This document shows, piece by piece, positions 24,494 to 61,845 of a stretch of DNA of 64,000 nucleotides. Both the position numbers and the translations under genes were made by a program. Source of the stretch: Basidiobolus meristosporus CBS 931.73 (Eukaryota > Fungi > Basidiobolomycota); assembly GCA_002104905.1 (NCBI GenBank), contig MCFE01000079.1:1-64000 (forward strand), written 5' to 3'. Position 1 is the first letter of the stretch; every line of letters starts with the position of its first letter. The notes beneath the pieces were generated by a model. It was not told where the DNA came from. It searched no databases and saw only the letters and a program-made list of their open reading frames with translations.

Positions 24494-25654
24494 ATCAAGT
24501 ACGAAATAACCTTTGGCCAAGTCGACTCCATTCTGGCACCCCCACAGCTTTCTGGAGATCCTTTGGCCTTCGAAACAGCCCCCTTTGTCGCTCACTTAAT
24601 TTTGAACTGAGGTACCATCATCAGGTATTGGTTCCACATGATCGTCTAGGGAGTGGCCCTGGCGAGCCAATGGTCGTAACACATTTCTTATTGATTTGGA
24701 TCCTTATGGCAAGGAGGTTCCGGTCAGGTTGCAAAGGAGGGCCATAAACGACTCAGCGTTGGCTGTTGATCGTTCCTGTCGGCATGTACTCCTATTCCTG
24801 CTGATCGTCAATCCTTTGATTAACAATGCTGCGATCACATCATGTTGAGTTCCTGACCCCACGATCACCAATCGAATTGACTCCCTCCCACAGTTTACGT
24901 TGGCCGTCTCGACACAGTTATCCATACGGCATTCGCTCAGTTGATGAATGCCAGACACCTCATGCAAGCGACATTAAAACTAATATTCCTTGGGGTGCAA
25001 ATATATACATGTGTGTGTTTCGGCTCAAAACACAGACCGTAGAAATAGAAACAGCCGCCAATCCGATCCAGGCCTCAAACACCGTAGGGAGTGACATTGT
25101 TGTGATCGAGACGGTATCGGTTGGACATCCTATTCATTGCAAGCTGGAGAATGCGTAACGGCCGGGGGAACATTGGGCAAAGAGTTGCGATACAAACCAC
25201 ACGCGTCGTTAAGCAGGACGATGTGGGAATTACTATTCCAACCCTAACACCAAGTACGGCTATCGTGCCAAATAATTCAAGCACAAGATGGATGAGGAGT
25301 ACCTGTGTTTCTTGCCAATAGGCACACTGCGCTTTACGAAGGCTACATGAAACCTCGTCCATCAATGTATCGACCTGTGGAGATCACATTCATCATCATT
25401 GCGTTTTGGAAACACGAGGTAGCCACCGGCCATTGCTGCAGACGATTGGGAGGGAAGCTGAAGTCATCATACAGAAAAATCACTAATTACATTGTTTTCA
25501 TCAAACATGCAGAATTCCTGTGCTGGGTAGGCTTGTTAGCGATCTGGCCGATTAGAGCTCGACCTCCCTTTTAAACATGTTTCGCCCGCTTGTATTGCAC
25601 TCGTGTATCTTTTCTTTTAACTAACCTGAATCCTTGTTTGGCAAGCGACAAAAC

Positions 25655-38799: not shown

Positions 38800-39986
38800 T
38801 CAGGTTTCCAAATGAATAGAGGTACTGGAGCTCATCAACTACAGATGTTTGATTTTCCCCAGGCATGGCTGCACTTCCAACTCTTGCAAAAACAGCTGTT
38901 TTCTTGCTGGTATATCTTCCTGGCTATGATGGAATTCAGTCTGTTCTGGGCTTGTGGCATTGTTTGGCAAGATCTACAGCTTTTTTCTCATACTTTCCTG
39001 TCTCTGGCTTGGGTAGACTTTTCCCCTCACCTTCTCCTTTATCACTGCCAGCTTTTTCACTGCTGCTTTGTCTAAGTACTTCTTATATTGACCTATGTTT
39101 TCTCCTTGATAAATACTGCTCTAATGCATCTGTCTTGGCCTGCTTGTCCCTTACTGGCACTCTGCAGGCAGCCTGATGCTTCTTTCCCACTGGTTTCAAG
39201 ATCTCAGTGCATACTGTGATGGGCACCTGATGTAGTTGCCAGTTTTTATCACTGCCAGGTCCTTTGCTGCTGCTTTGAATATGCTCTTCTTGAGTGGAAC
39301 TACATTTTTTCTTGATAAATGTTGTGGTGGTGCATATGTGTCTGCCTGCTTTTCCTCTATTGGCACTCTTCCAGCTACTTGATGTCTCTTTGACACTTGT
39401 TTTGAGCTTTGGCCCAGCTTGTAACAGGCTCTTGAGGAAGCTGCTGGCTTTTAGCCATTGCACCCATATTCTTCTGCCTTTGGTAGTTTCTACCATTCTT
39501 GAGATACTTTCTTGCCATACTAATGCTGGCCCAAAATCTTTTTGCTTGTTTGAATCCAGCATAATGTGCATGGAACAAATTAAGCGCATTCTGCTTGGCC
39601 TTGAGTTCCTGATGGTCCCCTGGTATGCCAGCCTTAAGGTGTTGGTGTACTAGACTTCCAACAGCCTCTTGAATACTAGTCCACTCTTCATATTTGCACT
39701 CAGTGGCTTCAAGGAGTTTCAATGTCTTTTGATTTGTAGGCTTTGGTATATTCACAACATTTTCTCTCTCCCATGCTGTGATAGGTTTTTCTGTGGGCTT
39801 TATCTTTGATCACTGTTGTTTTGCTTCAAAGGCTGTGAGGTGTTCCTTTGCTGTTACATTGGGAAATGACTCAATTCTTGGATGAGACATTGAGCTACTT
39901 GAGTTCCTTCTTTGCAGCAAGGATACTGCTTTCTCTATATGGGATATTGATTGCACTACACAGATTTTCCACTCATTCTGCCTCTT
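38800..39986 (-). mobile_element. Decayed segments of the host DNA-transposon family (Lys-rich second-ORF region), inverted relative to 48380-49800
   Basis: Reverse-complement similarity to 48900-49700 (e.g. GKAGRHICTTTT.IK.KCSSTQEEH.QSSSKGPGSDK in both). Continues on the far side of the Copia insertion at 44095. Confidence 0.75.
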
Positions 39987-40041
39987 TGTTGTAAGAGTCT
40001 TGGAGATATTGGAAGTGTTTGAGAGGACAAGTAGATTATGT
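39987..40041 (-). repeat. Truncated 3' LTR (last 55 bp only)
   Basis: Matches 43747-43801 with 3 mismatches in 55 nt; fused directly to the start of RNase H. Confidence 0.88.
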
Positions 40042-40049
40042 ATATATTA

Positions 40050-43000
40050 CTCTGCCTCTGTGGTTGAAAGTGCTACGGTTCATTGCTTTCTTGAATTCCA
40101 TGAAATTGCTCCTTTACAATAAAGAAAGGTGTATCCTGTGGTGGATCTTCTGTCTTCCAAATTTTGTCCCCAATCAGCATCAGAGTATCCCACAAGATCC
40201 TGTTCTGAATCCTTGTAAGTGTATCTTAAGCAGATATCAGCAGTTCCTTTTAGGTATCTAAAAATCCGCTTAACTGCTGCAATATGATCAGATCCATAGT
40301 TCTGATTATGTTGGCTGACAACTCCCACTGAATATGAGATATCTGGACGTGTTCCAAGCATGATATACATCAGACTGCCGACCATAGATTGATAAGGAAA
40401 GTCAGGGCTTTCAGATGGCACCAAGCTCTCTTGATTTGGTTGAGTTTTGACCAAGTTAAGGTTTGTCTCCATTGGGGTAGCTGCCGGTTTACAGTCTTCC
40501 ATTTTGTACTTCTTTAGTATATCTTGAATACACTTGGATTGACTTAGGGTGATAGTCTGGGTACTTCTGTCTATGGAGAACTTAATCCCTAAGTAGTAAC
40601 TAAGTTCTCCTAGATTGGACATCTTGAACTCCTTAGATAGGCTGGATTTAGTCTCTTCCAATGTTTCTAGATTATTGGTGGCTATAATAAGATCATCCAC
40701 ATAGAGAGCTAATAGAACTGGATTTGCTCTATCTGGCTTATAGTATATACTATAGTCAGCATTACTCCTTTTGAAACTCAAAGATTCCAAATAAGAATCT
40801 ATCTTGCAATTCCAGGCTCTTGGTGATTGTTTGAGACCATATAGTGACTTTTTAAGCTTGCAGACCAAATGGGGGTTATCTTGGTCAACAAACCCATCAG
40901 GCTGGTCCATATACACATCCTCATCAAGTTCTCCATTCAAAAATGCAGCATTTACATCCATTTGATGAGTAAAAAACTTATATTTGGCTGCAATAGCCAA
41001 TATTAATCTGATGGAATTAAACTTGGCTACCAGTGCAAAGGTCTCAGTATGGTCAAGTCCTTTTGTTTGAGAGTATCCTTTGGCTACAAGTCTTGCTTTG
41101 TATCTTTCAATTGTACCATCAGCCTTGTATTTTGTCTTGAAGACCCATCTGCATCCAATTGATTTTTGGTTGATTGGTAATTTGACTAAGTCCCAAGTTT
41201 GATTTTCCATCAAGGCCTGATATTCCTCAGTCATTGCAGATCTCCAAAACTTCATCTGAGGTCTATTTAGGGCCTCTTTTACAGTCTGGGGCTCATCAAC
41301 ATGGACTGAATAGGCATAGGCTAAGTGTGTACCCTCATTGATATAGTAATTTGGGCCATATCTTGTCTGATTTGACCTCTGGGTATTTGATACTGGAATG
41401 ATCACTTCTGGGATATTCCTGGGCACTGATTCTGGCTGAACCACGGTTGCAGAGTCCTCTAGAGTGAAAAAGATTTTCATTGTTTTGCTCTGATTCAATC
41501 CTGACAATTGGTGGACTTGAGATCAAATTTTTGTCATCATCTGATGTCATTTTTTGTGAAAAATTTGAATTTTCATCAAACAACACATGCCTGGACTTGA
41601 TCAGCTTCTTGGCTTTGGTATTATAGAGTCTGTATGCCTTACTCTCATTGCAGTAGCCCAAAAATATGCACTTTACACTTTTTGGCTCAAATTTTGACTG
41701 ATTGCTGGCCAATATGCATTTTTCACTTTTTGGCTCAAATTTTGACTGATTTCCGGCCAGTTTCTTGGCATATGCTGTACACCCAAATATTCTTAGATGT
41801 TCTGCACTTGGTCTGTATCCATACCATGCTTCAAATGGAGTAGAATCACAAAGTATTCTGTTATAACTCCTATTTTTAAGGTATACAGCTGTGGCAACTG
41901 ATTCCACCCAAAAATCATAGGATAATTTTTGATCATGGATCATAGATCTTGCCATATCAATTATTGATCTGTTAGCTTGTTCTGCTACTCTATTTTGCTG
42001 TGGGGAGTATGGTACAGTAGTCTCTTGCTTTATCCCATGAATTTTGCGGAAGTGGATGAAGAGTTTTGAGGTATATTCTCCACCATTGTCAGAGCCTATT
42101 TTCTTGATTTTTTCACCAGTTTCTCTCTCCACCATAGCTTTAAACTCCCTGAACTTAGACAGAGCTTCTTCCTTTCTCTCCATGAAGTAGACCCATGTAT
42201 ATCTTGTATAATCATCAATAAAAGTAATTAAATACTTCATCCCACCTCAGAATAATTTTGCATAGGTCCACACAGATCTGAGTGAATTAGATCTAGTTTT
42301 TTCTTAGTTTTGATTAACCCAGAGCTCTTGAACAGTTGTCTGGCTTGTTTCCCATATATGCAGGCTTCACAGTGCTCCAAATTAGCTGGGGGACCAATTT
42401 TCACTTCAGAAATTAGCTAATCTTTGATCATTTTACACAAATTATCAAAATTGATGTGTCCAAATCTCCTGTGGCAAAGCATTGGTGCTTCTTCATTTAA
42501 GTTACTTATATTGGCTTCCAGATATGATGGAATATAAGTCAACTTGTATAGATTCTGATCTCTGATGCCCAAAGCAATATGAGCACCATTTTGCTCAGTG
42601 ATCCTGCATCCAGAATTGTCAAAACTGAAACTGAGTCCTTCTGCTGTGGCCTTGCTTACAGATAGTAGGTTCTTAGCTATTTCTGGTACATAGAGTACTT
42701 CTTTAAAGGTCAGTGTATGGCTTCCTTCACTGCTTCTAAGGTTTACTTGGATAGTCCCTTTTCCCACTGCATCAAGTGTTCTATTGTCACCCATGAAAAC
42801 CTTCTTAATTGGAATCTCTTGATTTTGGGTAAAAAGTTCTTTTTGGTGTGTAAAGTGTTGATAAGCTCCAGAGTCAATATACCACATCTGAGAATCCTTG
42901 TTTGTGGTCATATTTAGTGCAGATATGAATAGTCTATCTTCAGTTGTTGCAGCATTTCCATATTCAAGCTTCTTTTGCTGATTATCTTTCTTTTTGAGAC

Positions 43001-43715
43001 ACTGGTCTGATGTATGTCCTTTCCTTTTGCAGTAGTTACAAAACAGGTTGCTGTTGCCTTTGTAGGGTCTTGGGTACCTCCTTTGTTGGTTATCATTGCT
43101 TATTATAGCATTTTCTTCTTCCTTCTTATAAGCGCTTGATTTTCTTAATTCTTCATCCAGGAGCCTTCCATATACGTAATTTAAGGTCAAATCATCAGTT
43201 CTGTACTCTAGGGCTGATACAAGGCCCTCAAACCTGTCTGTCAGGCTATTCAGGATGCTAAACTTCACATCCTCATCAGTAGTTGGTATGCCCACAGATT
43301 CCATCTCATCAACCAGCAGGGTAATTCTGTTAATTAGATTTTTCATTTCTTTTCCTGGCAGCATCTTTGTAGTAAAGAATTTTTGTCTCAGATACATCTT
43401 CTTGGCAGCTGAACATGACTGGCAGGTGTCTTCTAATGCTTTCCAGGCATTCTTTGCCGTTTTTGCTCTTGAGCATTGAATTAGCAATTTGTCCTTGACA
43501 TTAAGGCAAATGCAGTTAAAGGCACTTTGTTCTTTCTTCTGGTACTTTAAGGCTTCCTCTCCCACATTTTTAAGAGGGCATTCTTCTCCTATGACAATAT
43601 CCCAAAGGCCTCTTTCTTGTAGCAGCATCTTCATCTTCACCTTCCACACTTGGTAGTTAGAACCATCCAGCTTTTCAGCAGAGGGAAAAATTCCAGTAAT
43701 AGCAGTAGTAGACAT
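40050..43715 (-). pseudogene. Copia gag-pol, disrupted
   Basis: KLDGSNYQVW (gag), CNYCKRKGHTSDQC knuckle, WYIDSGA protease, HRRFGH, FIDDYTR/SDNGGEY integrase, QMDVNAAFLNG/YVDDL RT. Stops and frameshifts, a ~45-nt tandem duplication at ~41670-41760, and RNase H truncated after RKQ*TVALSTTEAE*. Confidence 0.92.
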
Positions 43716-43733
43716 TGCAGAGAGTGACAGCTT

Positions 43734-43746
43734 GGGGCTTATAACC
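43734..43746 (-). promoter_or_regulatory. Primer-binding site GGTTATAAGCCCC (variant of the copia-type GGTTATGGGCCC tRNA-iMet half-molecule PBS)
   Basis: Directly abuts the LTR end CAACA; gag ATG follows at 43715. Confidence 0.75.
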
Positions 43747-44094
43747 TGTTGTAAGAGTCTTGGAGATATTGGAAGTGATTGGGAGAACAAGTAGATTATG
43801 TGTTTTCACTTAATGATTTATTGAATGTAAAAGTAGTATTTATACTTTTACCTGGTCTTGGCATTACAAACACGTAGAATAGGTTAAGGAAGGTCCCAAA
43901 AACATGTGTGCAAAGTTTAGGGTTGTTTGGACAACTTTGAGAATTTTCATGTTCTGGGTACCTGGTATTTTGGTGAAAATATTCTAAGTAATTCCTGACA
44001 AGGAATTTGGTCAGTATTTTTTAGGATTTGAGGGTAATGATCCAAGTGACTAAGTTAGGTGAATATTTAGGTGGAATTATGAGTTTTTGCAACA
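43747..44094 (-). repeat. 5' LTR (348 bp) of the Copia element
   Basis: Starts TGTTGCAAAAACTC and ends CTCTTACAACA on the minus strand; immediately followed by the PBS. Confidence 0.9.
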
Positions 44095-44853: not shown

Positions 44854-47800
44854 GTCAAACCGCATGAAAATTAATTTGGTCCCATGGGTGGATCCAATCC
44901 AGATGAGTTGTCAAGATCCCATCTGAAGGCAGCTATAATACCAGCAGCTTGGAATAAATGACTATCTACACAACTTTGTGACAGGATCACAACAATGTTT
45001 TGCTAATCTTACACCAAAATGATGCTCATAAAATATAGCAGTGTTTGTACAGTGCTTTGCCAAGGATGGCATGGCATTGTTGCAGTTTAACACGCTTCAC
45101 AACTATCTGAGTTAATCTAACCAGCCAGTACATCCCATTACCTTATAAGGTAAAGAATTTGATGGTGACTTGACAGCCTCTTTGCAAGCCTCTGATGGCA
45201 TTATCATGGCAGTATGGCAGCCTACAGCTAGTTCTGTATAATGCCACCTTACTAAATTACCAAATGGTGTTTCCTTTTTCTACTGCCCCATGTGCAATTC
45301 ATATATTCACTGTAGTATCACCCCGGTTTAGTTGCTCATCCACAACTACCTTGGGTAATCTACATAGAATTCAAATCAAAAAATACTATGTCCTCCCACT
45401 TACTAACCTCTATAAATGTACACACCTGCTACAATTGGCATACTTCTATCACCTCAACCTTTCAGCTTTTTAGTGAGATGCTTTCAAAGTTGCCATTTAC
45501 CTTGTATTGCTGGTAACATATATCCAGAATACCCAAAAAGAACCTTTTGGTATTTAGCCAATAGACTTGTTCCGTTGGATAGTGCCACATTGAGCCATGA
45601 GTGCCAAATGATGCCATAGTGTACCAGAGAGGCCAAATGAGCCTATTCTTGGCCACAGAGTGTGAAACAGAGCTTTGCATCTTCATGCAAAGTAGCCCCC
45701 GGGCTTCACCCATGATGTAGGAGAAAATCCATTTTTTGATGTTTTTTTGTGGATCAATGTTGTGCAGAATGTGTAAGAGAACAGAAGAACTGAAGACATG
45801 CATCAGGTACGCAATACCCATGGCACTCTGAATCTAGCTCCTGTGGCTTGTAGCATGTCACAAAAATGCATGGCACTATCTTAGTCCACTGGTACTGTCT
45901 GGCACTATAATTGCTTTGTATAGATCTTACTTTAGGGCTAATAATTAAATACAGTGCCAGAGAGTACCAGTGGACCAAGATAGTGCCATGCATTTTTGTG
46001 ACATGCTACAAGCCACAGGAGCTAGATTCAGAGCGCCATTAGTATTGAGTACCTGATGCATGTCTTCAATCCTTTTGTGCTCTTACTTATCCTGCACAAC
46101 ATTGACCTAAAAAAAAAGGTCAAAAAATGGATTTTCTCAAACACAATGAGTGAAACACAGGGGCAGCTTTGCATGAAGATGCAGAGCTCTGTTTCACACT
46201 CTGTGGCCAAGAATAGGCTCATTTGGCCTCCCTGGCACACTATGGCATCATTTGGCACTCATGGCTCAATGTGGCACTATCCAATGGAACAAGTCTAATA
46301 TATTCCTTCTCCCAAGCAAGCAAGGTCCAGTATTCTCAACACACCAAGCAAGATGGAGTAGCAAATGGATACAGTAGCAGCAGAGATCTATGTGTTCAGC
46401 TGTATGCTTGTGGTATAGCTGCTCAAGTCCCATCACAAACCACTTGATCAAAAGCTGTAGATTGGTCAAGTTGGCATTGGTAATCCACTTCTGGATTAAG
46501 ATTCCTACAATGTCCACATATCAGTCCAAATGTGTCCAATATACTCTTGGTAGAAATGGCTTCAGAAGGCCACTCAAATAATACATATCCAGTTCATCCA
46601 GTCCTTGCACTTAAATTGTTGCATATGCATATGAATATTGATTGCAGCTAGTGAGAAGTACTTAGGGTAGCAGATACATTGTAATGTCTTGCCAACTCTT
46701 TCAAATTTCTCTGGTATCTCAAAGGGCTCATTTAGCTTGAAATGCCCCCTGTACAACCTGGTCATCAGTATCGGGATATTGCTGTAAAGCAAATGCATTG
46801 CTCCCAGTGGAAAGCTTTTGCACTAACATATACCCTCTATCCTAAGTATATCTGGTTTCTAATTAATTCCATATTCTGGCAAATGGCTTACAGCTTGCCA
46901 ACTTTGCTGCAATTGCATGCTGACTTTGGTACATTCTCTAGGTGTAAAGATGATGTTCTTAGTGTTGGTGTTTGGGTAAGGGTAATGTGTGTGAGTTATG
47001 GAGTAGGTCCCCTGCATCTCACACATTTGACAGCAAAACCATACATTGTGCCCAGAAAAGCCAGCTATCTTGATGGTGGCTGCAGTATCTCCAATGCAGA
47101 TAATAATATGCGCTTTTACATGACAGCCATTTGCTGTTTTCTCACTGGAAAGCATACAAACTCATCCAGCAATGGATACAGGGAGCCTTCCAGGCTAGAT
47201 GGTAATTTAGGCACAGATGCCAGTGAGACTACCATTCCATTTTGGCTCTGATACCGTAAGATAGGTGGCAGATTCATGTTGATGAGAATTAGTGGCCAGC
47301 AGAATTTGCCAGTAGAGTACTTCCTTAATGAGAATCCATCAGGTGCCAATGCAATGGCATAGTCATACATACCTTCAAAGTAGCCCTTGCTTATTAGCTC
47401 TTTGATATTCTTGCCACTTAATATATCTGGTATATTTGCACTTAGTTGATGCTGAATGCTGTACTTTATAGCTTCACAATATCTGTTGCACTGCATGAGC
47501 TTCTTTTTGTGGGGTGTTACCAGAATATATCTGGAGTGTGAACAAGGTTTTCCCCCAATGGTGGTGGATTCCTGACAACCTGGACACCTTGCAATGGTTA
47601 CATTTTCTGATGTGAATGCTATGCAACTCTTGACATGTGCTGTTATCAGGATGGTCTTTGGGCCATATGTGACAAGCATATAATGATTTTCCATTTATAC
47701 CATACACATGGTAAGTTGCATCCTAAAATGATTTGGCAAGAGATAGTAGTAAATACTCAAACCCCCCTTACTGCTATGAGTGAAAATATGCAACTTCTCT

Positions 47801-48370
47801 AGCCACAACATCACATCATTGACTGGTGGATGGATCACTGAGCTCACTTGACTCCATAATGTCTCCTTGCCATTTTTTTCTACAGGTGTTGTCTCATTGC
47901 ATTATGAGATTTTGCCAGGCTCATGCAGGATACTGTTGTCAAGAAAGATAGGCTCACAATCCATCAGTGAGCCTGCTTGTTAAGTGCTATTGCTCTGTAG
48001 GCCATATTAAGAAGGCAGGGGTGAGCCCAAAGATGTCACAAATTATCCTGACTCAGTTTGCACAAGGCAACAAGTATGGCCAGATGCCATTATAGAGGTA
48101 ACAAGTGGCCAGCAAGATATTGTTAGTACAGTAGTGACTGGGGAATGGTCAAACATGAACTGTGCGGCAAAACACTGGCCAGGATCCTTGTAATACTTCC
48201 TATGCTGTCTGCACGCTTCATGGCTGAAAGGCTTGCCACTATAGACACATGTTCTTTCTACTCCTCTCTTACAGCATTGAATCAAAGTAGTCTTGTCCAT
48301 GGGGCACACATTTTGACACTTAACAAAGTAATGCTATTATATCACTATTTGTCAATACTCATGACACTTT
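44854..48370 (-). mobile_element. Host DNA transposon copy A: decayed tnp2 (Transposase_21, CACTA/EnSpm-like) transposase region
   Basis: IALAPDGF..CWPLILINMNLPPILRY..N..PK.P..LYPLLDEF (47116-47694) and AHIIICIGDTAATIKIAGFSGHN..CCQMC (46859-47155); many stops and frameshifts; interrupted by foldback 1. Confidence 0.8.
45563..46296. mobile_element. Foldback (long-TIR, MITE-like) element 1: 344-bp arms + 46-nt loop, TSD AAT
   Basis: AAT|AGACTTGTTCC...GGAACAAGTCT|AAT; arms are reverse complements; loop at 45907-45952. Confidence 0.92.
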
Positions 48371-48379
48371 GAGACAGTC

Positions 48380-49800
48380 TTATATGTGAGACATTGCACT
48401 TACAGGAGTGTAAGAGTTAATGATGCCCACTCTAGTCAGCATTAAAAATAATGTTGTGGCACCACAAACACACATGTATGTAACACCATTCCCCCTTTGG
48501 TTTGACTTGCTTCCCCTTATATGGCTCCAAGAAATAAAGTATAGTTGTCTGGCTCCCAACCAAACCCTACTGCTGACAGCAGCAGAAGAATGGTTGGACA
48601 ACAGCTTGCTGTCATTCAGTGCAACAAGCAGGGCTACAACCAAAAAAGGCCCTGCAGACAGTTTGCCCACTGAAGGTAATAATGCAGACACCTCAGGCTC
48701 TCAGTCAATTAGGCAATTGGAAATCCCTGAACAGTTGCAAGCTGACCATATTGCTGAGGCAGGTGAAAATGTAGCAAAAGCAGTTGCTTCAGTTGAAGAG
48801 CAGCAAGTGGCTGTCACAACATCACTGCCACCTGTGTTACTAAGTATGTTGTCAGCTCATACCAAAGCATCAATAAGGCAATTAGGTGGAGTGGCTGATA
48901 GGACAGGTGTAATGGCCTGGAGAAATCAGGAAATAGTCCAGAAACAGGATGAGTAGATAAAAGGTGTCAAGCAGTTAATATTGCAGGTGGAAAAAGTAGT
49001 ATCTTTGCTGCAAAGAAGGAACTCAAGTAGCTCAGCATCACAGCCAAGAATTGAGCTATTTGCCAATGTAACAGCAGAGGAACACCATTGTAGTGGGGTC
49101 ACAGTGACATCCACTGACAGATGTGCTCATTCCCATATTTTTTACTTCCCAATTTTTCTACTACACTGATATTAGTTTTATCCTATTTGTCTTACTTAGG
49201 GGAAAAGCAGGCAGACACATATGCACCAGCACAACATATATCAAGGAAAAATGTAGCTCAACTCAAGAAGAACATTGTCAAAGCAGCAGTAAAGGACCAG
49301 GCAGTGACAAAAGCTGGCAGCTGCCTCAGGTGCCCATCATAGTATGGACTGAGATCTTGAAACCAGTGGGAAAGAAGCATAAGGTGGCCTGCAGAGTGCC
49401 AGTAAGGGACAAGCAGGCCAAAACAGATGCATCAGAGCAGCACTTATCAAAGAGAAAACTTAGGTCAATACAAGAAGCACTTAGACAAAGTAACAGTGAA
49501 AAAGCTGGCAGTGATAAAGGAAAAGGTAAAGGGGAAAAGTCTACCCAGGCCAGAGACAGGGAAGTGTGGGAATGAAGCTGCAGTTCTTGCCAATCAATGC
49601 CATAAGCCCAGAACAGACTGAATCCCATCATAGCCAAGAAGAATCACCAACAAGAAAATAGTTGTTTTCACAACAGTTGGAAGTGCTGTAGTGGGGTGAC
49701 AGTGACACCCACTGACAGAAGTGCTCATTCCCATATTTTCTACTTGCCTATATCTCTGCTACACTTATTTTAGTTTTATCCCATTTGTCTTACCTGATCA
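48380..49800 (+). mobile_element. Host element second-ORF region (plus strand, degenerate, internally duplicated)
   Basis: ORF fragments 48420-48956 and 49123-49575 are homologous to the minus-strand copies at 38800-39986, 44095-44853 and 54650-54900. Confidence 0.7.
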
Positions 49801-51508
49801 GCACTATCCTGTAAGCTGGTTGACTATCACACCTGCTTACCTTATTGCATAAGTTATCCCTCACTTTATGTAAGATTACTAGCTGTGAGTGCTTCTATAT
49901 TAGGCATATACCTGCGCCAGTACCCATGACACATGATCAACCTGTGTCACCATCCCTACCATCTTCATACCATATATGGTATCCCTATGTTACACAGGTT
50001 TCATAATACTGATTCCTGATTGGTGGGATGTGCTGTGCCTTTTAGAACCTTCTGGCACCTACTCTGAATACTCTTAGCTCATTCTGATGTTATTACAATT
50101 TCTATTGATCTCTGGAACCTTCTGGAACACCATGATTAGTAATTACTTAGCCACTGAGAAAAGTATACAAGGGAGGCTATCCCTCAACAATAAATCAGCA
50201 TCCCTTTTATCAATATTCTGACTTGTTGATTAGTGTGATCACTGCTACCTGCTGCTACCTGAACTTCCAACCCAAGACCACAGGACACTCCCAGGAAACT
50301 GCGCTGACAGCCAACTGACCTTGGAGGCACTACTTGTGAGGAATACTCAGAGTAGGTATCTTTTATTGTATTTGATTCTTCCCCCAGTTTGTTCTTATAC
50401 AGGCAAAGATACTTTTCTGTCTTTGTAACTATTGACCACAGCTGCATTCTTATCAAGTCCCTGCTGGTGGAGTTTACAGTTGTTTTGACTTTGGAAGCTT
50501 CAGTCCTTTGTCATCTCAAAGGATGCTGAACCTAGCACATACTTTTGTTCAGATGCCAACCAAGTTGGGGATTGTAGCACAATAGTTTTCCCTTGACAAG
50601 CTTGTGGCTTTATTCCCCATCACATTAGATTAGAGACAAACCCAAGTATTCCTAGCAAGCTTTTGCCAGAGGTTATTGCACCCAGTGAACACCCCACACA
50701 CAAAACACTTGAAAAGTGTTGGACGTATCTCTCCCTTGGACTTGTACACCACCACAGCTCAGTCAGTTGAGTTACATTCCAGTGAGGTAGATAAGTTTGC
50801 AGATAAAGGCAATTTGTCTACCCTGGCCTCCACATCCTCCATTGTTGACAGAGTGAAGATCCCTCTGACAGACAAAGTAGCAATATCAAGAACTCAAATG
50901 GTCATCACAATGCCTTTGGTGGAATTCTGGAACATTAATAGGCACAACAAGGAGTTACAACACTTCTTCAAGAGCAGTGCTCAAGAAAATGCACTTGAAT
51001 ATTGCAAGGCTTTATTGCAAAGACTGGTAGAGGAGGAGCTAGACCTTGCAGTACTGGCTGAAAGCCAGGTCACATAGGAACCAGTGGATGAACAGTGGCA
51101 TAGAGCTGTAGGGTTTCCACCAAAGATGTGCAAACAGAGCATTACAGCAAAAGATACTTATTGGGTGGTGGATTTTAATGGAGATGCTTGTTCAGTGTTG
51201 GGTTGGGCTTAATGTTAGTGTAGGTTATAGGGACTTATATAGGCCAATGCAATTGGCATTGAGGTACAACTGAAGTTTCAATGGATATAAATCAATTTGT
51301 ATACATGAAACATAGAGTAATCATTAGATTTGTTCTGTTGGATAGTGCCACATAGTGCCAGCCTGTTTATGGTGCCGGATCAATCTGGCACTCTACGGCA
51401 CTATCTGGCACTATAATTTCTGCCATGATGCCAGTGGTATGATACAGTTACTGGTAATTTTACTCAATCTTACTTATGTTGCTCAGAATAGTGCTTTCCT
51501 TGCTTTAT

Positions 51509-52021
51509 TTACTCTTCATATTGCTCCAGACACATTTCTCTCAGTGGATGTCTTCTTGTGTGAACACACTGTGCATTAATAAGTATCTTAACTATTTTAC
51601 CTATTCTGCTGTTATCTCCTATATATGACTTTCCTCTGTATTTACCTGCCAATATGCTGAATCTCTTCAGATATCCAAATGTGTGCTCTACCCTTACTCT
51701 GAAATGATTAAATATCTCATTGTAGAGCTTCTGCTTCCTGCTAAGCACACCATTCCTTGGCTTCCTATAAGCTGTAATACATCCTAATCTCTGACAATCC
51801 TCTCCTATATAGGCTAAGTCTGCCATACATTTCTCCCTTCTACTGAATTCAGGATGATTCTCTACCCAGAGTGCTTTGTCATGCCTACTTCCAGCAAATG
51901 GCCCACTAAACCAGATGATGTTACCCTCAATGTCAGACAGTGCTTGAAACTTCACACAGTGTGCCTTGTACTTGCCAGAATAAAAGTGCCTCTGCCCTCT
52001 AGAAGGTCTGTTAATCCTCAC
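51509..52021 (-). CDS. DDE_Tnp_4-type transposase, C-terminal catalytic part (open for 170 codons; 5' part unresolved, probably in 52030-52330)
   Basis: RP....HFYSGKYKAHCVKFQ, GSRHD, ADLAYIG, YNEIFNHFRVRVEHTFGYLKRFSIL: IS5/ISL2/Harbinger-like catalytic motifs. Confidence 0.85.
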   Translation of the reverse strand: MRINRPSRGQRHFYSGKYKAHCVKFQALSDIEGNIIWFSGPFAGSRHDKALWVENHPEFSRREKCMADLAYIGEDCQRLGCITAYRKPRNGVLSRKQKLYNEIFNHFRVRVEHTFGYLKRFSILAGKYRGKSYIGDNSRIGKIVKILINAQCVHTRRHPLREMCLEQYEE

Positions 52022-52456
52022 TGGGAAGGTATGTGGTTTGAATTGATTTGGTGCAATCTGTGTTATTTATCTGATTTTTAATACATTATGGTTAAATCTC
52101 CATCAATTGCCATGTATCCCATCATTATGTTGCAAAAATCATCCGCAAACAATGCCTTGGTACTTTTATTGATGCTTTAATCATAGGTCTATAATCAAAT
52201 AGGAAATCTGCGATTGATGTGATCTGATCCATGTCAACGTGATCCAAGATGCATCATGCATAATATATGGAAAATTCAACAATCACATTAGTTTTCATAT
52301 ATATTTCATATAAGACCAGGTTAATGCCAATATACTGCTTTATAAGTATCCAAATCCATTGCTATGGTCCCCATACCAAGCCTCAACTCATCTTTAGTAC
52401 AACCCAGACAAAACCCATCCCCCAGCTCACAGGTGCAGTCCGGACCAAAGAAGTTG

Positions 52457-53239
52457 ATGTTGGATCCGTTTGAGTTCTTGCCAAATGATTTTAGTATGGC
52501 CCAAGTGTCTATGATGAGCCTTCATACAGATATTTGGGCACTACTGATTAATTTAGCAGAACTAGATACCTCAGAGAGTCAACAAAGATGGAAGAATTTG
52601 AGTAGAAAGCTGTGGCATGAGTTCTACATCAAGATGCCAGCCAATGTATGTAAAAGGATATATAACAAGACAAGTATTGAAATCAAGAATGAGCTGAGAG
52701 TGAGGGGATTTGACAAAGAAGCCACACGGGAACAATTTCTTGTGCAATTTGCACAGTACAGGCTGGATGCGTCTGTTTGTGCCTCAACTTTGGGAACCAA
52801 AGAGATTTTGAATGAGTTTTTGCCTCAAATGACTAATGTACTACATGATATATTAGTAGAGCTAAGTGGCTTCCAAGAGCAATATACACAGGACTCATCC
52901 AGGCAACAGCTCCAAAGTATCAGACAGAGGGTAAGTGAATACCTTGAGGAATCAGATGGTGAGCTTCAGGAGGAAGAATACAGACTGCAAGCAACATTGT
53001 CCAGATTGTGCCAGCACGCCTTGCTGGATTCCCTACCATCTCATGCAACCACAGCGCGCCGGTGCATGTCAGTCCAGACCGCACCAACACCCTTCACCAG
53101 AACGCCCCACGTCAAGTCAATGCGTGTCGGGTCAACACGTGTGCTTCAGAGCAAAACTACAAGAACTTGCCAAACTGCTCATTTAGAAACAAGTCCATTG
53201 GAGCGGACCAAGTTGCGTCAACATGCGGCATCACATTGA
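52457..53239 (+). CDS. Second ORF of the PHIS-like element (unknown function; may continue in 53261-53611)
   Basis: 260-codon open frame inside the TIRs, divergent from the transposase. EIKNELRVRGF resembles a SAP-like helix; coiled-coil region follows. Confidence 0.6.
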   Translation: MLDPFEFLPNDFSMAQVSMMSLHTDIWALLINLAELDTSESQQRWKNLSRKLWHEFYIKMPANVCKRIYNKTSIEIKNELRVRGFDKEATREQFLVQFAQYRLDASVCASTLGTKEILNEFLPQMTNVLHDILVELSGFQEQYTQDSSRQQLQSIRQRVSEYLEESDGELQEEEYRLQATLSRLCQHALLDSLPSHATTARRCMSVQTAPTPFTRTPHVKSMRVGSTRVLQSKTTRTCQTAHLETSPLERTKLRQHAASH

Positions 53240-54649
53240 ACTCAGCCAAGGGCCATCTCAATGCATCAAGGCGCACATGCGCGTGCCGTTTTGCCTGACC
53301 ATCAGCAAGTTACTTCTGGTGAACTGACTGATGATGACCAACATGAAGTGCCTCAACCACCAGAGCCCTTAGCAAGTAAAAGAATGCGTCAGCGCGTGGC
53401 ACTACAGGCTGGTTCAGTTGGTTCAGTTGGAGCGTTTCAGCATGGCCAAGCTGCAGCATCATACTCATCAACTAGGAGGCAAAATACTGACTACAAATAC
53501 ACAAGTAGCCAAGATGATAGTCAGCCAGGAAGTAGTATAGGTGTGCAACGTGAGTCACTACCAAATGCTTCAGTAGTAATCCCTGTGAGAAAAAAACCCA
53601 GGAGAAGATGATGCGATTGCTTTGAATTGCTCACATTTGTAATGATCCTGACAACCCTTTTTTTTTGCGATCCAAATCAAGCCATTGCAAATCAGTGATC
53701 ATCAAATTTTTGATATAAGTAATATCAAGGTCGTCTCACATTTGAGACAGAACCCCTATAAATAAACACCCTGCATATATATACGTCATCTGTAATACCA
53801 GTGCAGCTAATGGATCTGTTTTGCACCTACACAATTGCTTGCGTGCTAGCTATGACACCTTGTCCAATCACTAGGATCAGGGATTTACTTGCTCAATGGG
53901 CAAAATTGGATATTTGATGGCAAATCAGGTAGCTTTTTCAGTAGTCAATGAGCCAATTGGGGGCTGCCAGCTTCAGGATACTTTTGGACTAATTAACCAC
54001 TGAGATACTGTCCAATTGGAGTGAGGGTAACCAAAATGGTAAGTATCTGTGTAGTTTATAGTGTGATAAACATTTATTTTCATTTACATTACAGAAACAT
54101 ATCCAAATACCGGATTTTACCTGCCATTATAGCGGTATCTGATTGCGCACGTGATGCAAACATTATGAGTTGGCGCAATCATCCGTGCCAACCTCATTGT
54201 GTCAGATTGTGCCATAGTGTGCAAGATTGTCCCGCATAGTGCAAAATTGTCCAAGAACAATCCTGCCTTCTGGTAGCTATAATATTGCGCCTGATTGTTC
54301 TTTACAACCGCGGATTGCACCGCGCACCCTGGCACGGTACAATGGAACAAGTCTATTGAGTCAGGTAATAAGGAGTATGAAAAAAAGGAAATAGCCAATG
54401 AATGCACACAAATACAGGAGGTGATAGAGTGTCCAGGGTCTGAAAGTGAGAGAATTGGCAGAAAACCAATCCAAAGCCACTTTTGTATTGTTGTGATGAA
54501 AAGTTTTAACAAAGTTTTTTTTGTGAAATCAGTGGTGCAATTATTTTTTGACAGTCTTTGCCTGGTGTTGTGATGAAATCATCACCTCTTAGATAGAGGA
54601 CTTAGAATCTGTGATGGTCTTTTGATGCAATCATCACAATATTTTTTTG

Positions 54650-56100
54650 TAGGGCCAAGCTAGCTGCTGTCCCACCATTCTTCTGCTGCTGTCAGTGGTA
54701 TGTTTAGTTGGGAACCAGACAGCTTTACATTATTTTCTGGCAGCATATATATGGGAGTGAGTCAAACCAATGGGGAAATGGTGCTACATACATGTGTGCT
54801 TGTGGTGCAACAACATTATTTATAAGGCATACTATGGCAGGTCATCATTGAATCTTACACTCATGTAAGTGCAATGTCTCAAATACAAGACTGTCTCAAA
54901 GTGGCATGAGTATTGACAAATAGTGATATAATAGTGTTACTCTGTTGAGTGTCAAACTGTGCACCCCATAGACAAGACCACCTGTGTTGAGCACCATAAG
55001 AGACAAGAAAAAAGGCCACGCGGCTATTGTAGCAAGCAACTCAGCTATGAAGCACACAGACAGCATAGGAAGCTTTACAAGGATCACAGAAACTGTTTTG
55101 TTGCAACAGTCATATTTGTCTATTCATCAGTTTAGTCAAGTGAGCCTAGCAATCCATCTCCCAGTCAATGACATGAAGTTGTGGCTGGAGAAGTTGCATG
55201 CTTCCACTTGTATCAGTAAGGGGGGCTTTGAGTATTTTCTACTACTTCTTGCAAATGTTATCCTGGGTTGCAACTTACCATGTAAATGCTGTAATTGAGC
55301 AACAAAAATGCAGCTGGCAACATATAACCCAGGGACCATGTTGATAACAACATGTGTTATCAATTGCATGGCATTCACACCAGAAAATGCCACCATTGCA
55401 AGGTTTCCAACTTGTCAGGAATCCACCACCATTGGGGAAGCAATTGTTCACATTCCAGATATATTCCAGTATAACCTTGTCTAAAGAAGCCTATGTAGTC
55501 TGACAAACATTGTGAACTATAAGGTGTCTCACTCAGTATCAATCCAGCGCAACCATGCCCAATGTATTTGATTGCAAGCATTATAAACAGCTAAAGAGCA
55601 AGGTCTCTTTTGAAGGTGTGCATGACCATGTCTCTGCCTTGGCACCTAATGGACTCTCATTTAACAATTACACTACCAACAAATCCTGCAGGCTACTGAT
55701 TCTCATTAACCTGAATCTGCCTCCTATCTTGTGGTATTAGAGCAGAAATCAGATGGCAGTTTCATAGGTATCTGGGCCTAAATCACAGTCCAATCTGGAT
55801 ACCTATCAGAATCCATTCCTGGAAGAATTTTGTACACTTTCCAGCAAAATAATGGCATATAGCCATCACGTCAAAGTGTGTAGTGCTATCTGCATCAAAA
55901 CACCCCAGCCACCCACAAGATGGCTCACTGTTCTGGGCATAATTACCAGTATTGCTGTTGAATGTGAGACATATAGGGGATTTACTCCATAACTCACACA
56001 TATAATTATTACCCAAACACCAGCACTAAGAACACAAACTTCCCACAGAAAGAATGTACAGAAGTCAGCATGCAATTGCAACAATGATGGCTAGCTGTTA
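54650..56100 (+). mobile_element. Host DNA transposon copy B (tnp2 transposase remnant, plus strand)
   Basis: 55555-55740 SALAPNGLSF..LILINLNLPPILWY is homologous to 47116-47694; 54650-55100 is the reverse complement of ~48100-48620. Confidence 0.75.
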
Positions 56101-56427
56101 GCATTGACTGGAATATGGAACTAACTGTCAAAAACTAGATAATTTGGTATCATTCAGCAGATAAAAATTTACTTAACAATTCCGGACAAGTCTTGGTCAC
56201 TGTGGGACTGATTTAAAGCCCTAACTTTGCCACTTCCTTCAGATCTATCATCCTACAATTATTCACCTATAGTTAAGATCAAATTAGCACTTTAACCAAG
56301 CATTGTGTACTAACCCTGCAATGGCTACGGAATGCTTCTCAATGTTGAGAAGCCCTCCTTACTTAGTGTCATAGTTGTATTACTTCTACAAAGGTATAAA
56401 TACTAAGCTTCTTTATGAATAAACAAC

Positions 56428-59322
56428 AGTTCACCCTATGAGAAATTATTGAGATGATCCTGTTAAAGGCTGTCACAAAGTCAAAGTCCTGTGACTAAGA
56501 GGTGCTGCTTTGATTGGCAATTGCTTCTTTTTCACACGCCTTACTTCCTGATGCAACCCTTTCTCTTACTTTTCATGCACACAAATTGGTTTATTTCCAT
56601 TGCAACTTCAGTTTTACCTAAATTGCCAATTGTATTGACCTATTCAAGTCCCTATACCTTACACTAACATTAAGCCCAACCCTGCACTCAACAAGCAACT
56701 CCATTAAAATCCACCACTTGATAAGTATTTCTGCTGTAACACTCTGGTTCCACAACTTTGGCCGGAATCCAGCAGATTTATGCCACTGTTCACTCACTGG
56801 TTCCCACATGTTCTGGTCTTTAGCCAGTACTGCAAGGTCTAGCACCTCATCAAGTCTTTGCAATAAATCCTTGCAAAATTCCAGTGCATTTTCTTGAACA
56901 CTGCTCTTGAAGAAGTGCTGCTACCGCTTGGTATGTCTATTAATGTTCCAAAATTCCACTGAAGGCATTATGATAGTCTTTTGAGCTCTTGACATTGTAG
57001 CCTTGTCTGTCAGTGGGATCTCCACTCTGTCAACAATGGAGGATGTGGTAGACAAATTGCCACTATAAACAGTGTTGCTGTCAAATGTGTGAGATCCAGG
57101 TGATTTGCTTCATATCTCACACACATAATTAATACCCAAACACCAGCACTCTCAACATTATCTTTCCACAGAGAGAGCATACAGAAGTCAGCATGCAATT
57201 GCAGCAAATTTGGCAAGCTATAAGCCATTGGCCAGAATATGGAATCACTTGGAAACAGGTGATACTTAAGATAGAGGGATCTCTTGGTGCAAAATCTTTC
57301 CACTGGGTGCAACACATTTGCTTTTTGACAATATCCCTATACTGATGACCAGGTTGTACAGGCAGCATTTCAAGCTAAATGAGCCCTTTGAGATACTGGA
57401 GAAATTTCAAAGAATTGGCAAGATATTTCAGAGTATCTGCTGCCCTAAGTACTTCTCAAGGGCTCCAATGAATATTGATATGCATCAAGAATATTACCTT
57501 TAAGTCTGTCATAGATGTGATGAGTTGGCACATGGAGGACAGCCAGGAAGACTTGGAAAATACTGAGGACAAATGTGCACATGGAGACACCAATGCCTAT
57601 GGCATTAAGAAGCTAAGCAGCCCCAATACGTAGGTAATTAGTTAAGTAATGCAAAGTTGCGTTGGGTGCAACAAGCAGCTGATTTTTATTAGGAAAACTC
57701 TAGTAAGAAATGCCAGATTTCTCATGGTCACAAGTCAACATCTACACCATTCAATATGGGATTCACTCAAACAAAAGCCAGTATGCATCTATAAGGGGGA
57801 CTAGAATCCAGCAGGAAGAAGGAATATATTGGTCAAATACCAAGAAGTTCTTTGCGGATATTCAGGAGGTATTCAGGGCAGAAGTGGTGCCAACAAAGTG
57901 TGTGTTTTCAAGATGTATATGTCTCCAGCAGTACAATATATATAGCAACTTTGCAAGTATCACACAAAAAGCCTGTAAAGTTGAGGTGATACAAGTATGT
58001 CAATTGTGACAGGTGTGAACATTTGTAGAGGTTGGTAAGCAGGAGGCCATAGTTTTTTTGATTTGAGGTATATGTGGAATACCCAAGGTAGTGGTGGGTA
58101 AGCAAATAAAGAGGGGTGATTCTACAGTGGAATATGTACATTGCACAAAGAGAGGTAGATAAAAGAAGCACCATTTGGTAAATTGGTATTATAGGATTAT
58201 ACAGAACCAGCTGTAGTCCACCATACTGCCAATATATTAGACTTGTTCTGTTAGATAGTGCCACATTGAGCCATGAGTGCCAAATGATGCCATAGAGTGC
58301 CAGAGCAGCCAAGTGAGCCTATACTTGGCCACAGAGTGTGAAACATAGATCTGCATTATCATGCAAAGCATCCCCTGTGTTTCACCTATGATGCAGGAGA
58401 ATATCCATTTTCTGATGTTTTTTTGTGGATCAATATTGTGCAGGATGTGCAAGAGCACTAAAGGATTGAAGATTTGCATCTGGTACTTAATACCCATGGC
58501 ACTCTGAATCTAGCTCCTATGGCTTGTAACATGTCATAAAAATGCATGGCACTATCTTGGTCCACTGGTACTATCTGGCACTGTATTTAATTATTAGCCC
58601 TAAAGTAAGATCTATACAAAGCAATTATAGTGCCAGATAGTACCAGTGGACCAAGATAGTGCCATGCATTTTTATGACATGTTACAAGCCATAGGAGCTA
58701 GATTCAGAGTGCCATGGGTATTGAGTACCAGATGCAAATCTTCAGTCCTTTAGTGCTCCTGCGCACCCTGTACAACATTGATCTAAAAAAAAAGGTCAAA
58801 AAATGGATTTTCTCCATCACAATGAGTGAAACACTGGGGCTGCTTTGCATGATGATGCAGATCTATGTTTCATACTCTGTGGCCAAGTATAAGCTCACAT
58901 GGCCTCTCTGGCACTCTATGGCATCATTTGGCACTCATGGCTCAATATGGCGCTATCCAACAGAACAAGTCTAATGTCATCAAAGTCTTGCTTTGAAGCC
59001 ATCAAATTACCGTCAAGTGTCATGCCATTAAGGCAATTGGATGTCCTGGCTGGGTGGATCCATTTAAAATAGTTGTAGAGCATTAAAATATTGCAACAAT
59101 ACCATGCAACTAATGTCACAGCACCAATTAAATGTTGTCAAGTTTTATCCCTTTATTTGGTGAGAAAATTGGCAAAACACCATTGTGCTCTTGTCTTAAG
59201 ATTGCAACAAGGGACACTAATTCCAAGTTGCTGGTATTATGATGGTCTCTAAATAGGATCCTGACAGCTGATCCAAATTGGATTTACCCATGGGACCAAA
59301 TTATTTTTCATAGGGTTCAACT
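56428..59322 (+). mobile_element. Host DNA transposon copy C (internally deleted; carries foldback 2)
   Basis: 57050-57520 is homologous to the copy A transposase 3' part; 56500-57050 is the reverse complement of 50790-51320. Possible short TIRs AGTTCACCCTATGAGAAATT / AATTATTTTTCATAGGGTTCAACT. Confidence 0.65.
58239..58972. mobile_element. Foldback element 2: 734 bp, 344-bp arms + 46-nt loop
   Basis: ATT|AGACTTGTTCTG...CAGAACAAGTCT|AAT; loop at 58583-58628; at least 84 bp of the inner arms are perfectly complementary. Confidence 0.92.
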
Positions 59323-59379
59323 ATTATCATTATTACTTGATATATTCCCTCCATCCAAAACATTTCTCAAATTGCAGCA

Positions 59380-61845
59380 TTATCTACAAACCAGACATAC
59401 TTAATATAAAGTGTATCTGTTGGAGCATAAGCTTCCCACTGGGAGCAATGCATTTGCTTTTCAACAATGTCCCTATACTGATGACCAAGTTGTACATGGG
59501 GTGCTTTGAGCTAAGTGAGCCCTTTAAGATACTGGAGAAACTTGAAAGAATTTGCAAGATATTACAAAATATCCATTACCCTAAGTACTTCTCATAGGCT
59601 TCACTCAATATTCATACACAAATATAATAATTTAAGTGCAACAACTGGATGAACTGGATATGTATTTATTCAAGCAGCCTTCTGAAGCCATTTTATCAAG
59701 AGTACATTAGAAGCATTGGGAGTTGTGCGTGGACAATAAAGAAATATATAACTAGAAATGGATCAACAATGCCAACTTGACACATCTACAGCTTTTGTGC
59801 AAGGTGTTTGTGATGTGATTTCAGAAGGTACACTACAAACATAAAGCTGGGCATGTAGATCTCTGCCACTACAGTATCCCTTCCCTACTCCTTCTGGCAT
59901 GGAGTGTGGAGAATATTGGGCTTTGCTTCACCTTTTGTGAGTTTCCAATGGAGTGGATGTGCGGGGAGATAGGAAGACAAGTCAAGTCACAGGTACCACA
60001 ATATCCCAATCTCAGCAAGAATCTTATTTTCAAGTCTGTAATTGAAGTGATGAGTTGGCTCATGTAGGACAACCAGGAAGAGATGGAAAATACTGAGGAC
60101 AGATGTGCACATGGAGACACATATACTTATGGCATTACAAAGCCAAATAGCTTCACTATGTGGGCAATCAGTTAAGTAATGCAAAGTTGGGTTGGGTGCA
60201 ACAAGCAACTAATTTTTATTACAAAAACTCTATCAATGTATTCCAGGTTTCTCTTGGTCACAAGTAAATTTCTAAACCATACAATTCAGAATTCACATAA
60301 GCAAGAGCCAATGCTCACCTATAAGGGGGACTAGACTCCAGAGGGAGAAGGAATGTATCAGACTTGTTCTGCTATATAGTACCACATTGAGCCATGAGTG
60401 CCAAATGATGCCAAAGTGTTCCAGGGAGGCCAAGTAAGCCTATGATTGGGCACTGAGTATAACACACCACTCTTCATCTTCATACAAAGCAGCCCCTGTA
60501 TATGACCCCCCTAATATTGGAGGAAATCCATTTTTTGACCTTTTTTCTTGGATCAATGTTGTGCAGGATGTGCAAGAGCTCAGAAGAGCTAAAGATATGC
60601 ATCTGGTACTCAATGCCAATGCCACACTGAGTTTAGCTCCTGTGGCATGTACATGTCACCAAAATGCATGGCACTGTGTTGGTTCAATGGTACCATCTGG
60701 CACTATGTTTAAATATTGGCCCCAAAGTAAAGCCTATACAAAGCACTTATAGTGCAAGATAGTACCAGTGGACCAAAAAAGTCCCATGCATTTTTATGAC
60801 CTGTTACAAGCCACAGGGGCTAGATTCAGAGTACCATGGGTATTTAGTACCAGATGCATATCTTCAGTCCTTCTGTTCTCTAACACATCCCGCACAACAT
60901 TGATCCAAGAAAAAAGGTCAAAAAATGGATTTTCTCCAGCATGGGTGGTGAAACACAGGGGCTACTATGCATGAAGATGAAGAGCTATGTTTCACACTCT
61001 GTGGCCAAGTTTAGGTATACTATGACTCAGTGGCACACTATGGCACTATTTGGCACTCATGGCTCAATGTGGCACAATCCAATGGAACAAGTCTATTGGC
61101 TAAATCCAATAGTTCTTGGCAGATTGTCAGGAGGTATTAATGGCAGAAGTGGCAGCAACCAAGTCCATGTTTGCAAGAAGTAAATGCTACCAGCAATAAA
61201 AGGTAAATGGCTACTTTGCAAATATTTCACCAAAAAGCCAAAAATTTGAGATGAAAGAGAGATACCAATTGTGGCAGATGTGAATATTAGTAGAGGTTAG
61301 GAAACCAGAGGCAATTTTTTTTTCTGATTTCAGCTATATGAAGAAAATCCAAAGTAGCAGTGGGTAAGCAAATAAGGAGGGGCAACTCTATATTGTAATC
61401 TATGAACTGTGTAAGGGAAGGTAGAAAAAAGAAATACCATTTGGCAAATTGGTATAGTGGCAGCATACAGCACTAGCTGAAGGCTGTTATATTGCTGTGT
61501 TCATGCCATCAGAGGCACACAATGAAGCTGATGCAACACTATCAAGTTTCTTGCCATATAAGGCAATTGATGCATTGGCCTGTAATATCCACTAAAATAG
61601 ATGTAGAGCACAATAAGACCGCATCAATGCCATGCAACCCTTGGCTAAACACCACCCAAACACCCTAATGTTTCTTAACTTTATTTAGCTGTAAAGCTAG
61701 CCAAATGTAGTTGTGATTGCATCATAAAATTACTGCAGAGTGTCATTAATTTCAAGCTGCTGGTTTCAAAATGGTCTCTTGATTGGTTCCTGACAGCAGA
61801 CATGGTTTAGATCCACCTGCAGTACCAAATTGTCACTCATAGGGT
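59380..61845 (+). mobile_element. Host DNA transposon copy D (3' transposase part; carries foldback 3)
   Basis: Colinear with the reverse complement of 44860-46850; ends with the same terminal-like segment (accaaattgtcactcatagggtc). Confidence 0.7.
60360..61094. mobile_element. Foldback element 3: 735 bp, same host site as element 1, more diverged
   Basis: ATC|AGACTTGTTCTG...GGAACAAGTCT|ATT; loop at 60705-60750; flanks equal the reverse complement of the element 1 flanks. Confidence 0.88.

Follow-up and report, generated by a model that had tools for sequence, protein, structure and literature searches.

Foldback elements in a nest of repeats

The window analysed here comprises the first 64,000 nt of contig MCFE01000079.1 of the fungus Basidiobolus meristosporus CBS 931.73, and from 44 kb on it holds nested repeats with ∼40% G+C. 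Among these repeats are three foldback elements of 734–735 bp, termed E1, E2, and E3, each of which consists of two inverted arms of ∼345 nt and a 46-nt loop. The subject of this report is the loop, which lies in opposite orientations in E1 and E2 between arms that lie in the same one. E1 spans 45563–46296 (734 bp; left arm 45563–45906, loop 45907–45952, right arm 45953–46296) and E2 spans 58239–58972 (734 bp; left arm 58239–58582, loop 58583–58628, right arm 58629–58972). E3, at 60360–61094 (735 bp; loop 60705–60750), is the most decayed copy, with arms that have diverged by 19.5%. The arms are 90–91% complementary in E1 and E2 and 80% complementary in E3, and the spacer between the detected arms is 34–46 nt long. 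The inverted arms thus make up nearly the whole element, as in other foldbacks, and E2 is predicted to fold into one hairpin with a DNA minimum free energy of −357 kcal/mol (z = −47; 20 shuffled sequences average −91). At the centre of E2 is a perfect palindromic core of 234 nt (58489–58722), in which complementarity is flawless for 94 nt on either side of the loop.

None of the three elements has coding capacity of its own. Open reading frames (ORFs) of 80–119 amino acids (aa) run to the element terminus in four of the six arms (58237–58497 (−), 58714–58974 (+), 46056–46298 (+), and 45462–45821 (−)), and these are probably fortuitous: they have no Pfam match, and the 86-aa one has no homologue in the protein collection. 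The arms also carry a repeated subterminal motif, ATAGTGCCA, which occurs 16 times in the window against one copy expected. A 146-bp miniature derivative at 2822–2967, in the gene-rich part of the window, retains just the outer ∼70–90 nt of both arms. A search of the window with a profile of all six arms returned nothing beyond the three elements, this derivative, and the end of a Harbinger element described below. Likewise, searches of metagenome, viral, and prokaryote-genome collections yielded no exact copy of an invariant 21-mer of the arms.

Insertion sites in a host repeat

All three elements are inserted in a host repeat of ∼2.3 kb, here called U, which is present in three copies: copy a (44858–47082), copy c (57061–59317), and copy b (59361–61831). 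Copies b and c follow each other in tandem, both inverted relative to copy a, 12 kb away. E1, in copy a, and E3, in copy b, occupy one equivalent position of U in opposite orientations. Copy c lacks this insertion and offers an empty site, GGAATAT-ATT-GGTC, at 57821–57834 (+) (target triplet 57828–57830), which is exactly the E1 site stripped of the element and one ATT. Copy c carries E2, an independent insertion ∼630 bp from the first position within U; the empty sites for E2 are found in copy a at 45192–45212 (−), with the target AAT at 45200–45202, and in copy b at 61492–61512.

Comparison with these paralogous empty sites reveals a 3-bp target-site duplication (TSD) whose triplet is AWT rather than TWA. 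On this basis the E1 duplication is AAT at both 45560–45562 and 46297–46299. The duplication around E2 is ATT at 58236–58238 and AAT at 58973–58975, with one mutation between the two, and that around E3 is ATC at 60357–60359 and ATT at 61095–61097. We rejected a TA target duplication of the Tc1/mariner type, under which the empty site should have been longer by 3 bp than it is. Nor do the elements show the 9-bp TSD of the MuDR/Foldback type (Drosophila FB), as the empty sites give 3 bp.

The copies of U differ from each other by 25–28% (a and b), 19% (c and a), and 18–28% (c and b). Copy c is thus empty at the E1/E3 position and yet is no outgroup to copies a and b, which implies either a precise excision from copy c or two hits at one hot-spot site. 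It is therefore uncertain whether E1 and E3 represent one single insertion. An ORF in or beside repeat U, at 47116–47694 (−), has a weak match to Transposase_21 (CACTA/tnp2 type; E = 5e-6) that falls under the Pfam cut-off.

Relationship to PIF/Harbinger transposons

The terminus of the foldback elements recurs at 51325–51349, where 24 of 25 nt match and no match is expected by chance. This shared terminus (51326–51360, + strand) is preceded by ATT and forms the left end of a PIF/Harbinger remnant. A 170-aa ORF on the minus strand (51509–52021), which lies 180 bp inward of the terminus, matches the PIF/Harbinger-type transposase domain DDE_Tnp_4 with E = 4e-22 (79 bits against a cut-off of 24.8). 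The foldbacks therefore share an end with an element that encodes a DDE transposase, in a copy that is itself degenerate: the upstream part of its transposase gene is broken. The remnant spans 51326–∼54650, a region that is single-copy within the window, and its right end was not found by pattern, inverted-repeat, or self-BLAST searches. An ORF beside the transposase ORF (52364–53239) has no significant Pfam match, and no Myb-like ORF, the second gene of an autonomous PIF/Harbinger partner, was recognised in the remnant.

We assign E1, E2, and E3 to the non-autonomous PIF/Harbinger elements on the grounds of their 3-bp TSDs with empty sites, the terminus they have in common with the remnant, and the DDE_Tnp_4 ORF next to that terminus. 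Judged by these sequence features, they are foldback-shaped members of this superfamily and form a new family. Like Tourist-like or PIF/Harbinger MITEs (miniature transposable elements with inverted repeats), they have a 3-bp TSD, termini linked to DDE_Tnp_4, no coding sequence, a miniature deletion derivative, and a repeated subterminal motif. Typical MITEs have short terminal repeats, whereas these 734-bp elements are almost wholly two inverted arms of 345 nt. The canonical target triplet of PIF/Harbinger elements is TTA/TAA. The triplet here is AAT/ATT, and the host is an early-diverging fungus.

In shape, the elements resemble Drosophila FB, Galileo, Tetris, and Caenorhabditis elegans Tc4, which likewise have very long inverted arms and a short loop, so that the whole element can snap back. 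Those foldbacks belong to the MuDR/Foldback, P, and Tc-like superfamilies and make duplications of 7–9 bp or other lengths. The partner of the present elements, unlike theirs, is a PIF/Harbinger transposon (for the superfamily placement of Galileo, see PMC4168063). With the three elements, the PIF/Harbinger superfamily gains a family of long-armed foldbacks, from a fungal lineage that has been poorly sampled. A literature search of incomplete coverage found loop isomers described for neither foldback transposons nor MITEs.

Orientation of the loop and the arms

A reading of the window made from the sequence alone, without database searches (hereafter, the sequence-only reading), had described the loop of E2 as the exact reverse complement of that of E1, in elements whose arms share one orientation. 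Both observations are confirmed. All 46 positions of the E2 loop (58583–58628, + strand) are matched by the reverse complement of the E1 loop at 45907–45952. In an alignment of 50 columns, the loops of E1 and E2 agree at 23 columns when read directly and at all 50 when one of them is reverse-complemented. The loop is thus not self-complementary, and so its orientation is unambiguous.

For the arms, the strings quoted in the sequence-only reading lie where it had placed them: TGATGTTTTTTTGTGGATCAAT is found in both left arms, at 45737 in E1 and 58413 in E2, and both right arms carry CTAAAAAAAAAGGTCAAAAAATGG (46107 and 58783) and CACAATGAGTGAAACAC (46142 and 58818). To count orientations, we aligned each element to its own reverse complement and scored the columns at which E1 and E2 both have unequal arms. 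Eight such sites support the same orientation, one supports the opposite orientation (column 231), and two are uninformative. The eight all fall in columns 149–192, a stretch for which we call the left-arm version alpha (E1, 45710–45751 (+); E2, 58386–58427) and the right-arm version beta (E1, 46108–46149 (+); E2, 58784–58825). With the loop of E1 designated a, the order is alpha–loop(a)–beta in E1 and alpha–loop(reverse of a)–beta in E2.

The flip in E2 is a segmental inversion whose ends fall within the arms, somewhere between the loop and column 192. Relative to E1, the inverted segment comprises at most 58428–58783, which is everything between the two patches, and at least the loop itself. 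The single opposite site, at 58466 and mirrored at 58745, would place the exchange within 58428–58466 (columns 193–231). Both elements measure 734 bp, so that no bases were gained or lost and the exchange was conservative. The breakpoints thus lie within homology, the outer patches have stayed in place, and the loop is reversed, which is the configuration produced by inversion between inverted repeats. Moreover, when compared with E3, the alpha and beta states include derived changes that the matching arms of E1 and E2 have in common, indicating that both elements descend from one asymmetric ancestor and that the centre was later inverted in one of the two lineages.

E3 has no such asymmetric patch, as both of its arms carry one identical hybrid version. 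We had considered E3 as a polarity reference for the flip and found it unusable, since its arms are symmetric at the patch. The claim of the sequence-only reading that E3 is wholly inverted and keeps the configuration of E1 therefore holds insofar as it can be read from the flanks in U, relative to which E1 and E3 keep one loop orientation; with the patch absent and the arms hybrid, the arms of E3 say nothing about it.

The patch itself contains alternatives of a small imperfect inverted repeat: TTGACCT-T9-AGGTCAA in beta, TTGAT..ATCAA in alpha, and TTGACC..GGATCAA in E3. This mini inverted repeat lies at 45737–45758 and 46107–46130 in E1 and at 58413–58434 and 58783–58806 in E2. By their sequences, alpha and beta look like two alternative corrections of the repeat, to which both E3 arms would be intermediate. 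The multinucleotide changes of the patch look like the type that is ascribed to template switching.

Signs of sequence exchange between the arms

The arms of each element have evolved in concert. In the pairwise comparisons of elements, we counted mirrored double differences, and tested them by permutation against the expectation that the arms mutate independently. E1 and E2 differ at 19 mirrored columns where 4.3 are expected (p < 5e-5), E1 and E3 at 18 against 9.7 (p = 0.002), and E2 and E3 at 17 against 10.4 (p = 0.014). In the same comparisons, one element differs with both of its arms from both arms of the other at 15 (E1/E2), 9 (E1/E3), and 12 (E2/E3) sites. The mismatches between arms are also patchy: E2 has its 94-nt flawless run beside the loop (permutation p = 0.0013), and in E3 the patch, present as the hybrid version in both arms, is covered exactly by 41 nt without a mismatch (p = 0.003). 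Mutation-prone sites could account for some of the mirrored co-variation. The identical states in the two arms, together with the long perfect tracts, nonetheless argue for copying between arms, and such homogenisation is characteristic of exchange mediated by inverted repeats. Mutation resembling repeat-induced point mutation was considered as the cause of the unchanged AT-rich loop and was rejected, as the ratio of transitions to transversions is ∼1–2:1 in the arm pairs and the loops of E1 and E3 differ at 9 of 46 positions.

Both outcomes of exchange have precedents. In Saccharomyces cerevisiae, template switching between the arms of inverted repeats yields homogenisation as well as spacer inversion; the inversion arises upon a switch to the sister molecule, and inversions are described as reversible (PMC8604942). 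The present elements likewise have arms made alike, an inverted spacer, and switch points inside the arms. The yeast repeats have arms of ∼10–16 bp and spacers of 2–5 bp and lie in genes, whereas the arms here are ∼345 nt and the loop 46 nt long, in a mobile element. In palindrome P6 of the human Y chromosome, much more frequent arm-to-arm conversion occurs beside intra-chromatid crossovers, which are rare and turn the interior round (PMC3723533). The foldbacks show a similar pairing of frequent non-crossover conversion with a rare interior inversion; P6, however, has gene-bearing arms of ∼100 kb and is not mobile. On a smaller scale, hairpin-associated minute inversions are described in plastid spacers such as trnH-psbA (PMC2903610), and homoplastic microinversions in bird nuclear DNA (PMC3123225). 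There, too, loops flanked by stems flip, sometimes recurrently and within species. Those stems are short, the plastid cases belong to an organelle genome, and neither set involves transposons.

The pair of E1 and E2 shows both homogenisation and spacer inversion, and for this reason we take arm-to-arm exchange as the best explanation. The suggestion of the sequence-only reading that the elements recombine arm to arm is supported by an inverted segment that ends in the arms, by the unchanged length, and by the concerted evolution of the arms. E1 and E2 offer a small, clean case of elements that display side by side the two results which exchange between inverted repeats is known to have.

Explanations for the inverted centre

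We consider it probable that the central segment was flipped by homology-driven exchange between the inverted arms of foldbacks mobilised by PIF/Harbinger, and that the flip is neither programmed nor a replicative flip-flop. In outline, a PIF/Harbinger DDE transposase would have mobilised E1, E2, and E3, and the common ancestor of E1 and E2 would already have been asymmetric at the 44-bp patch. In one lineage, the loop and up to ∼155 nt of each inner arm would then have been turned round by exchange between the arms. Possible routes include an intramolecular crossover, a template switch during replication, and the repair of a break near the hairpin tip; in the last, the template may have been the sister chromatid or another copy, aligned antiparallel. 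The molecular route and the choice of ancestral isomer are matters of inference, whereas the anatomy, the TSDs, the empty sites, the terminus in common with an element that has a DDE_Tnp_4 ORF, the partial inversion, and the co-variation of the arms are shown by the sequences. A purely intramolecular event with its exchange point between columns 193 and 231 would accommodate the opposite site at column 231. Exchange without crossover would keep the arms similar, and the flip would be a passive by-product of a near-perfect palindrome.

Several points weigh against this explanation. Three copies have yielded one flip event only. The evidence for the orientation of the arms comes from one 44-bp stretch with two clustered patches, and the eight patch sites probably reflect three or four mutational events rather than eight independent ones. 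A further point concerns the central 136 nt (columns 303–438), where E1 and E2 differ at 3 positions compared with 73 of 604 elsewhere (∼12%). The contrast has a Fisher p of 2e-4 for a region singled out post hoc; a test of the longest run, which is free of this bias, reaches only p = 0.054. As a lead only, this contrast would favour a donor from another copy over a purely intramolecular flip, in conflict with column 231.

Such a donor defines the first alternative, in which the centre of E2 (or of E1) was recently overwritten by conversion or break repair from an antiparallel member of the family, leaving a chimera between copies. The three differences in the central region are all E1-specific singletons and the loop has none in 46 positions. 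Nor does this region evolve slowly as such, given that E1 and E3 have diverged by 16% within it. On the other hand, the region was selected after viewing the data, and the run-length permutation is the unbiased test given above. In addition, sites in columns 215–302 at which both E2 arms are unlike both E1 arms limit the transferred tract to ∼136 nt, and the opposite site at column 231 must then be homoplasy. We regard an origin from another copy as unlikely.

An assembly artefact, by which the E2 loop was misoriented in a graph left ambiguous by short k-mers or reads, would remove the flip altogether. In the 234-nt core of E2, the loop alone is asymmetric, and the nearest asymmetric base is 94 nt off, which is where such an error could arise. 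Any read of at least 110 nt that spans the loop and position 58488 would, however, orient the loop, and the contiguous passage of 64 kb through nested repeats of 75–88% similarity suggests a long-read assembly. Column 231 is beyond the perfect core, and its opposite site accords with a genuine inversion. An error of this kind seems improbable.

The sequence-only reading had likened the two isomers to the flip-flop termini of parvoviruses and poxviruses. The likeness extends to the two isomers of an imperfect palindrome, whose unpaired parts are reverse complements of each other, and to the very stable hairpin predicted for E2; on this view, such a pair would come from a flip-flop during replication that proceeds through hairpin transfer, or from cruciforms processed whenever the element is copied. 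Parvoviral and poxviral palindromes, however, are termini of linear replicons and are inverted whole by nick-and-copy at each replication. E1, E2, and E3 are inserted within a chromosome, have TSDs, paralogous empty sites, and a partner with a DDE transposase, and play no evident role in replication. Their flip is partial: the loop is inverted and the alpha/beta patch in the outer arms is not, whereas hairpin transfer would invert the whole palindrome. E1 and E3 have kept the same orientation across 15–19% divergence. No nickase or Rep-like gene was recognised among the ORFs scanned against Pfam, in a search of the window that was not exhaustive for such genes. As a mechanism, the viral analogy is thus unsupported for these elements, and we consider it very improbable.

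A switch operated by a site-specific invertase of the Hin/Gin or FLP type, with an adjacent recombinase gene and short defined crossover sites, does not fit either: the 734-bp element has no recombinase, and no such domain is present in the scanned ORFs of 44–64 kb. Also very improbable is that no inversion took place and that E2 is an E1-type element on the other strand, whose alpha and beta patches arose in parallel on the wrong arms by recurrent quasi-palindrome correction; patch 2 does resemble alternative corrections of the mini inverted repeat and template-switch changes can recur in parallel (PMC8604942), but this account needs parallel multinucleotide changes in two patches and both arms, at least three or four events that yield eight identical states, compared with one inversion.

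Frequency of the inversion

The term flip-flop in the sequence-only reading implied repeated toggling, and here the evidence falls short of it, as the window shows a single flip. The orientation shared by E1 and E3 despite 15–19% divergence gives no sign of rapid toggling. It is nonetheless tempting to speculate that the family serves as a set of genome-wide flip/flop reporters, in which the loop toggles recurrently, at a rate similar to that of point mutation or even within one culture. In this scenario, which we consider doubtful, the hairpin tip would provoke breaks or template switches, with repair in one register or the other. If it were true, the patch and the loop orientation together would document how palindromes are processed in an early-diverging fungus, and the homogenisation of arms would help long-armed Harbinger derivatives to stay mobilisable. 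The family would also provide a convenient natural marker of palindrome instability. As it stands, there is one event for which well-known mechanisms suffice, and its interest is modest.

Neighbouring genes and other repeats

The sequence of the window is fungal rather than human. Its left 38 kb contains long ORFs, among them a class IV-type chitin synthase (8102–10252), a large-subunit catalase (34854–37058, minus strand), an EH-domain protein, a Sel1-repeat protein, a ZIP transporter, and an M16 peptidase. The nearest relatives of the catalase are from Calcarisporiella thermophila (64% identity) and Umbelopsis (55–58%), and these sequence matches probably point to an early-diverging, Mucoromycota-like fungal host. 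The catalase has a DJ-1/PfpI-like C-terminal domain, and cyanobacterial catalases (58–59% identity) score nearly as well as the best fungal ones (55–64%). A scan of the window against Rfam returned no family that reached its gathering score.

Between the catalase gene and the repeat nest lies a Copia-type long terminal repeat retrotransposon (39083–43790, minus strand), whose gag, integrase, and reverse-transcriptase ORFs are in separate frames. Within it is a tandem repeat of two 48-nt units (41663–41759). The chitin synthase has a CHS4-like domain, and the Sel1-repeat protein (25634–27220) is encoded 15 kb away from it; in yeast, a protein of this kind activates chitin synthase III. Immediately downstream of the chitin synthase ORF is a second tandem repeat, at 10805–10920, with a unit of 38/26 nt.

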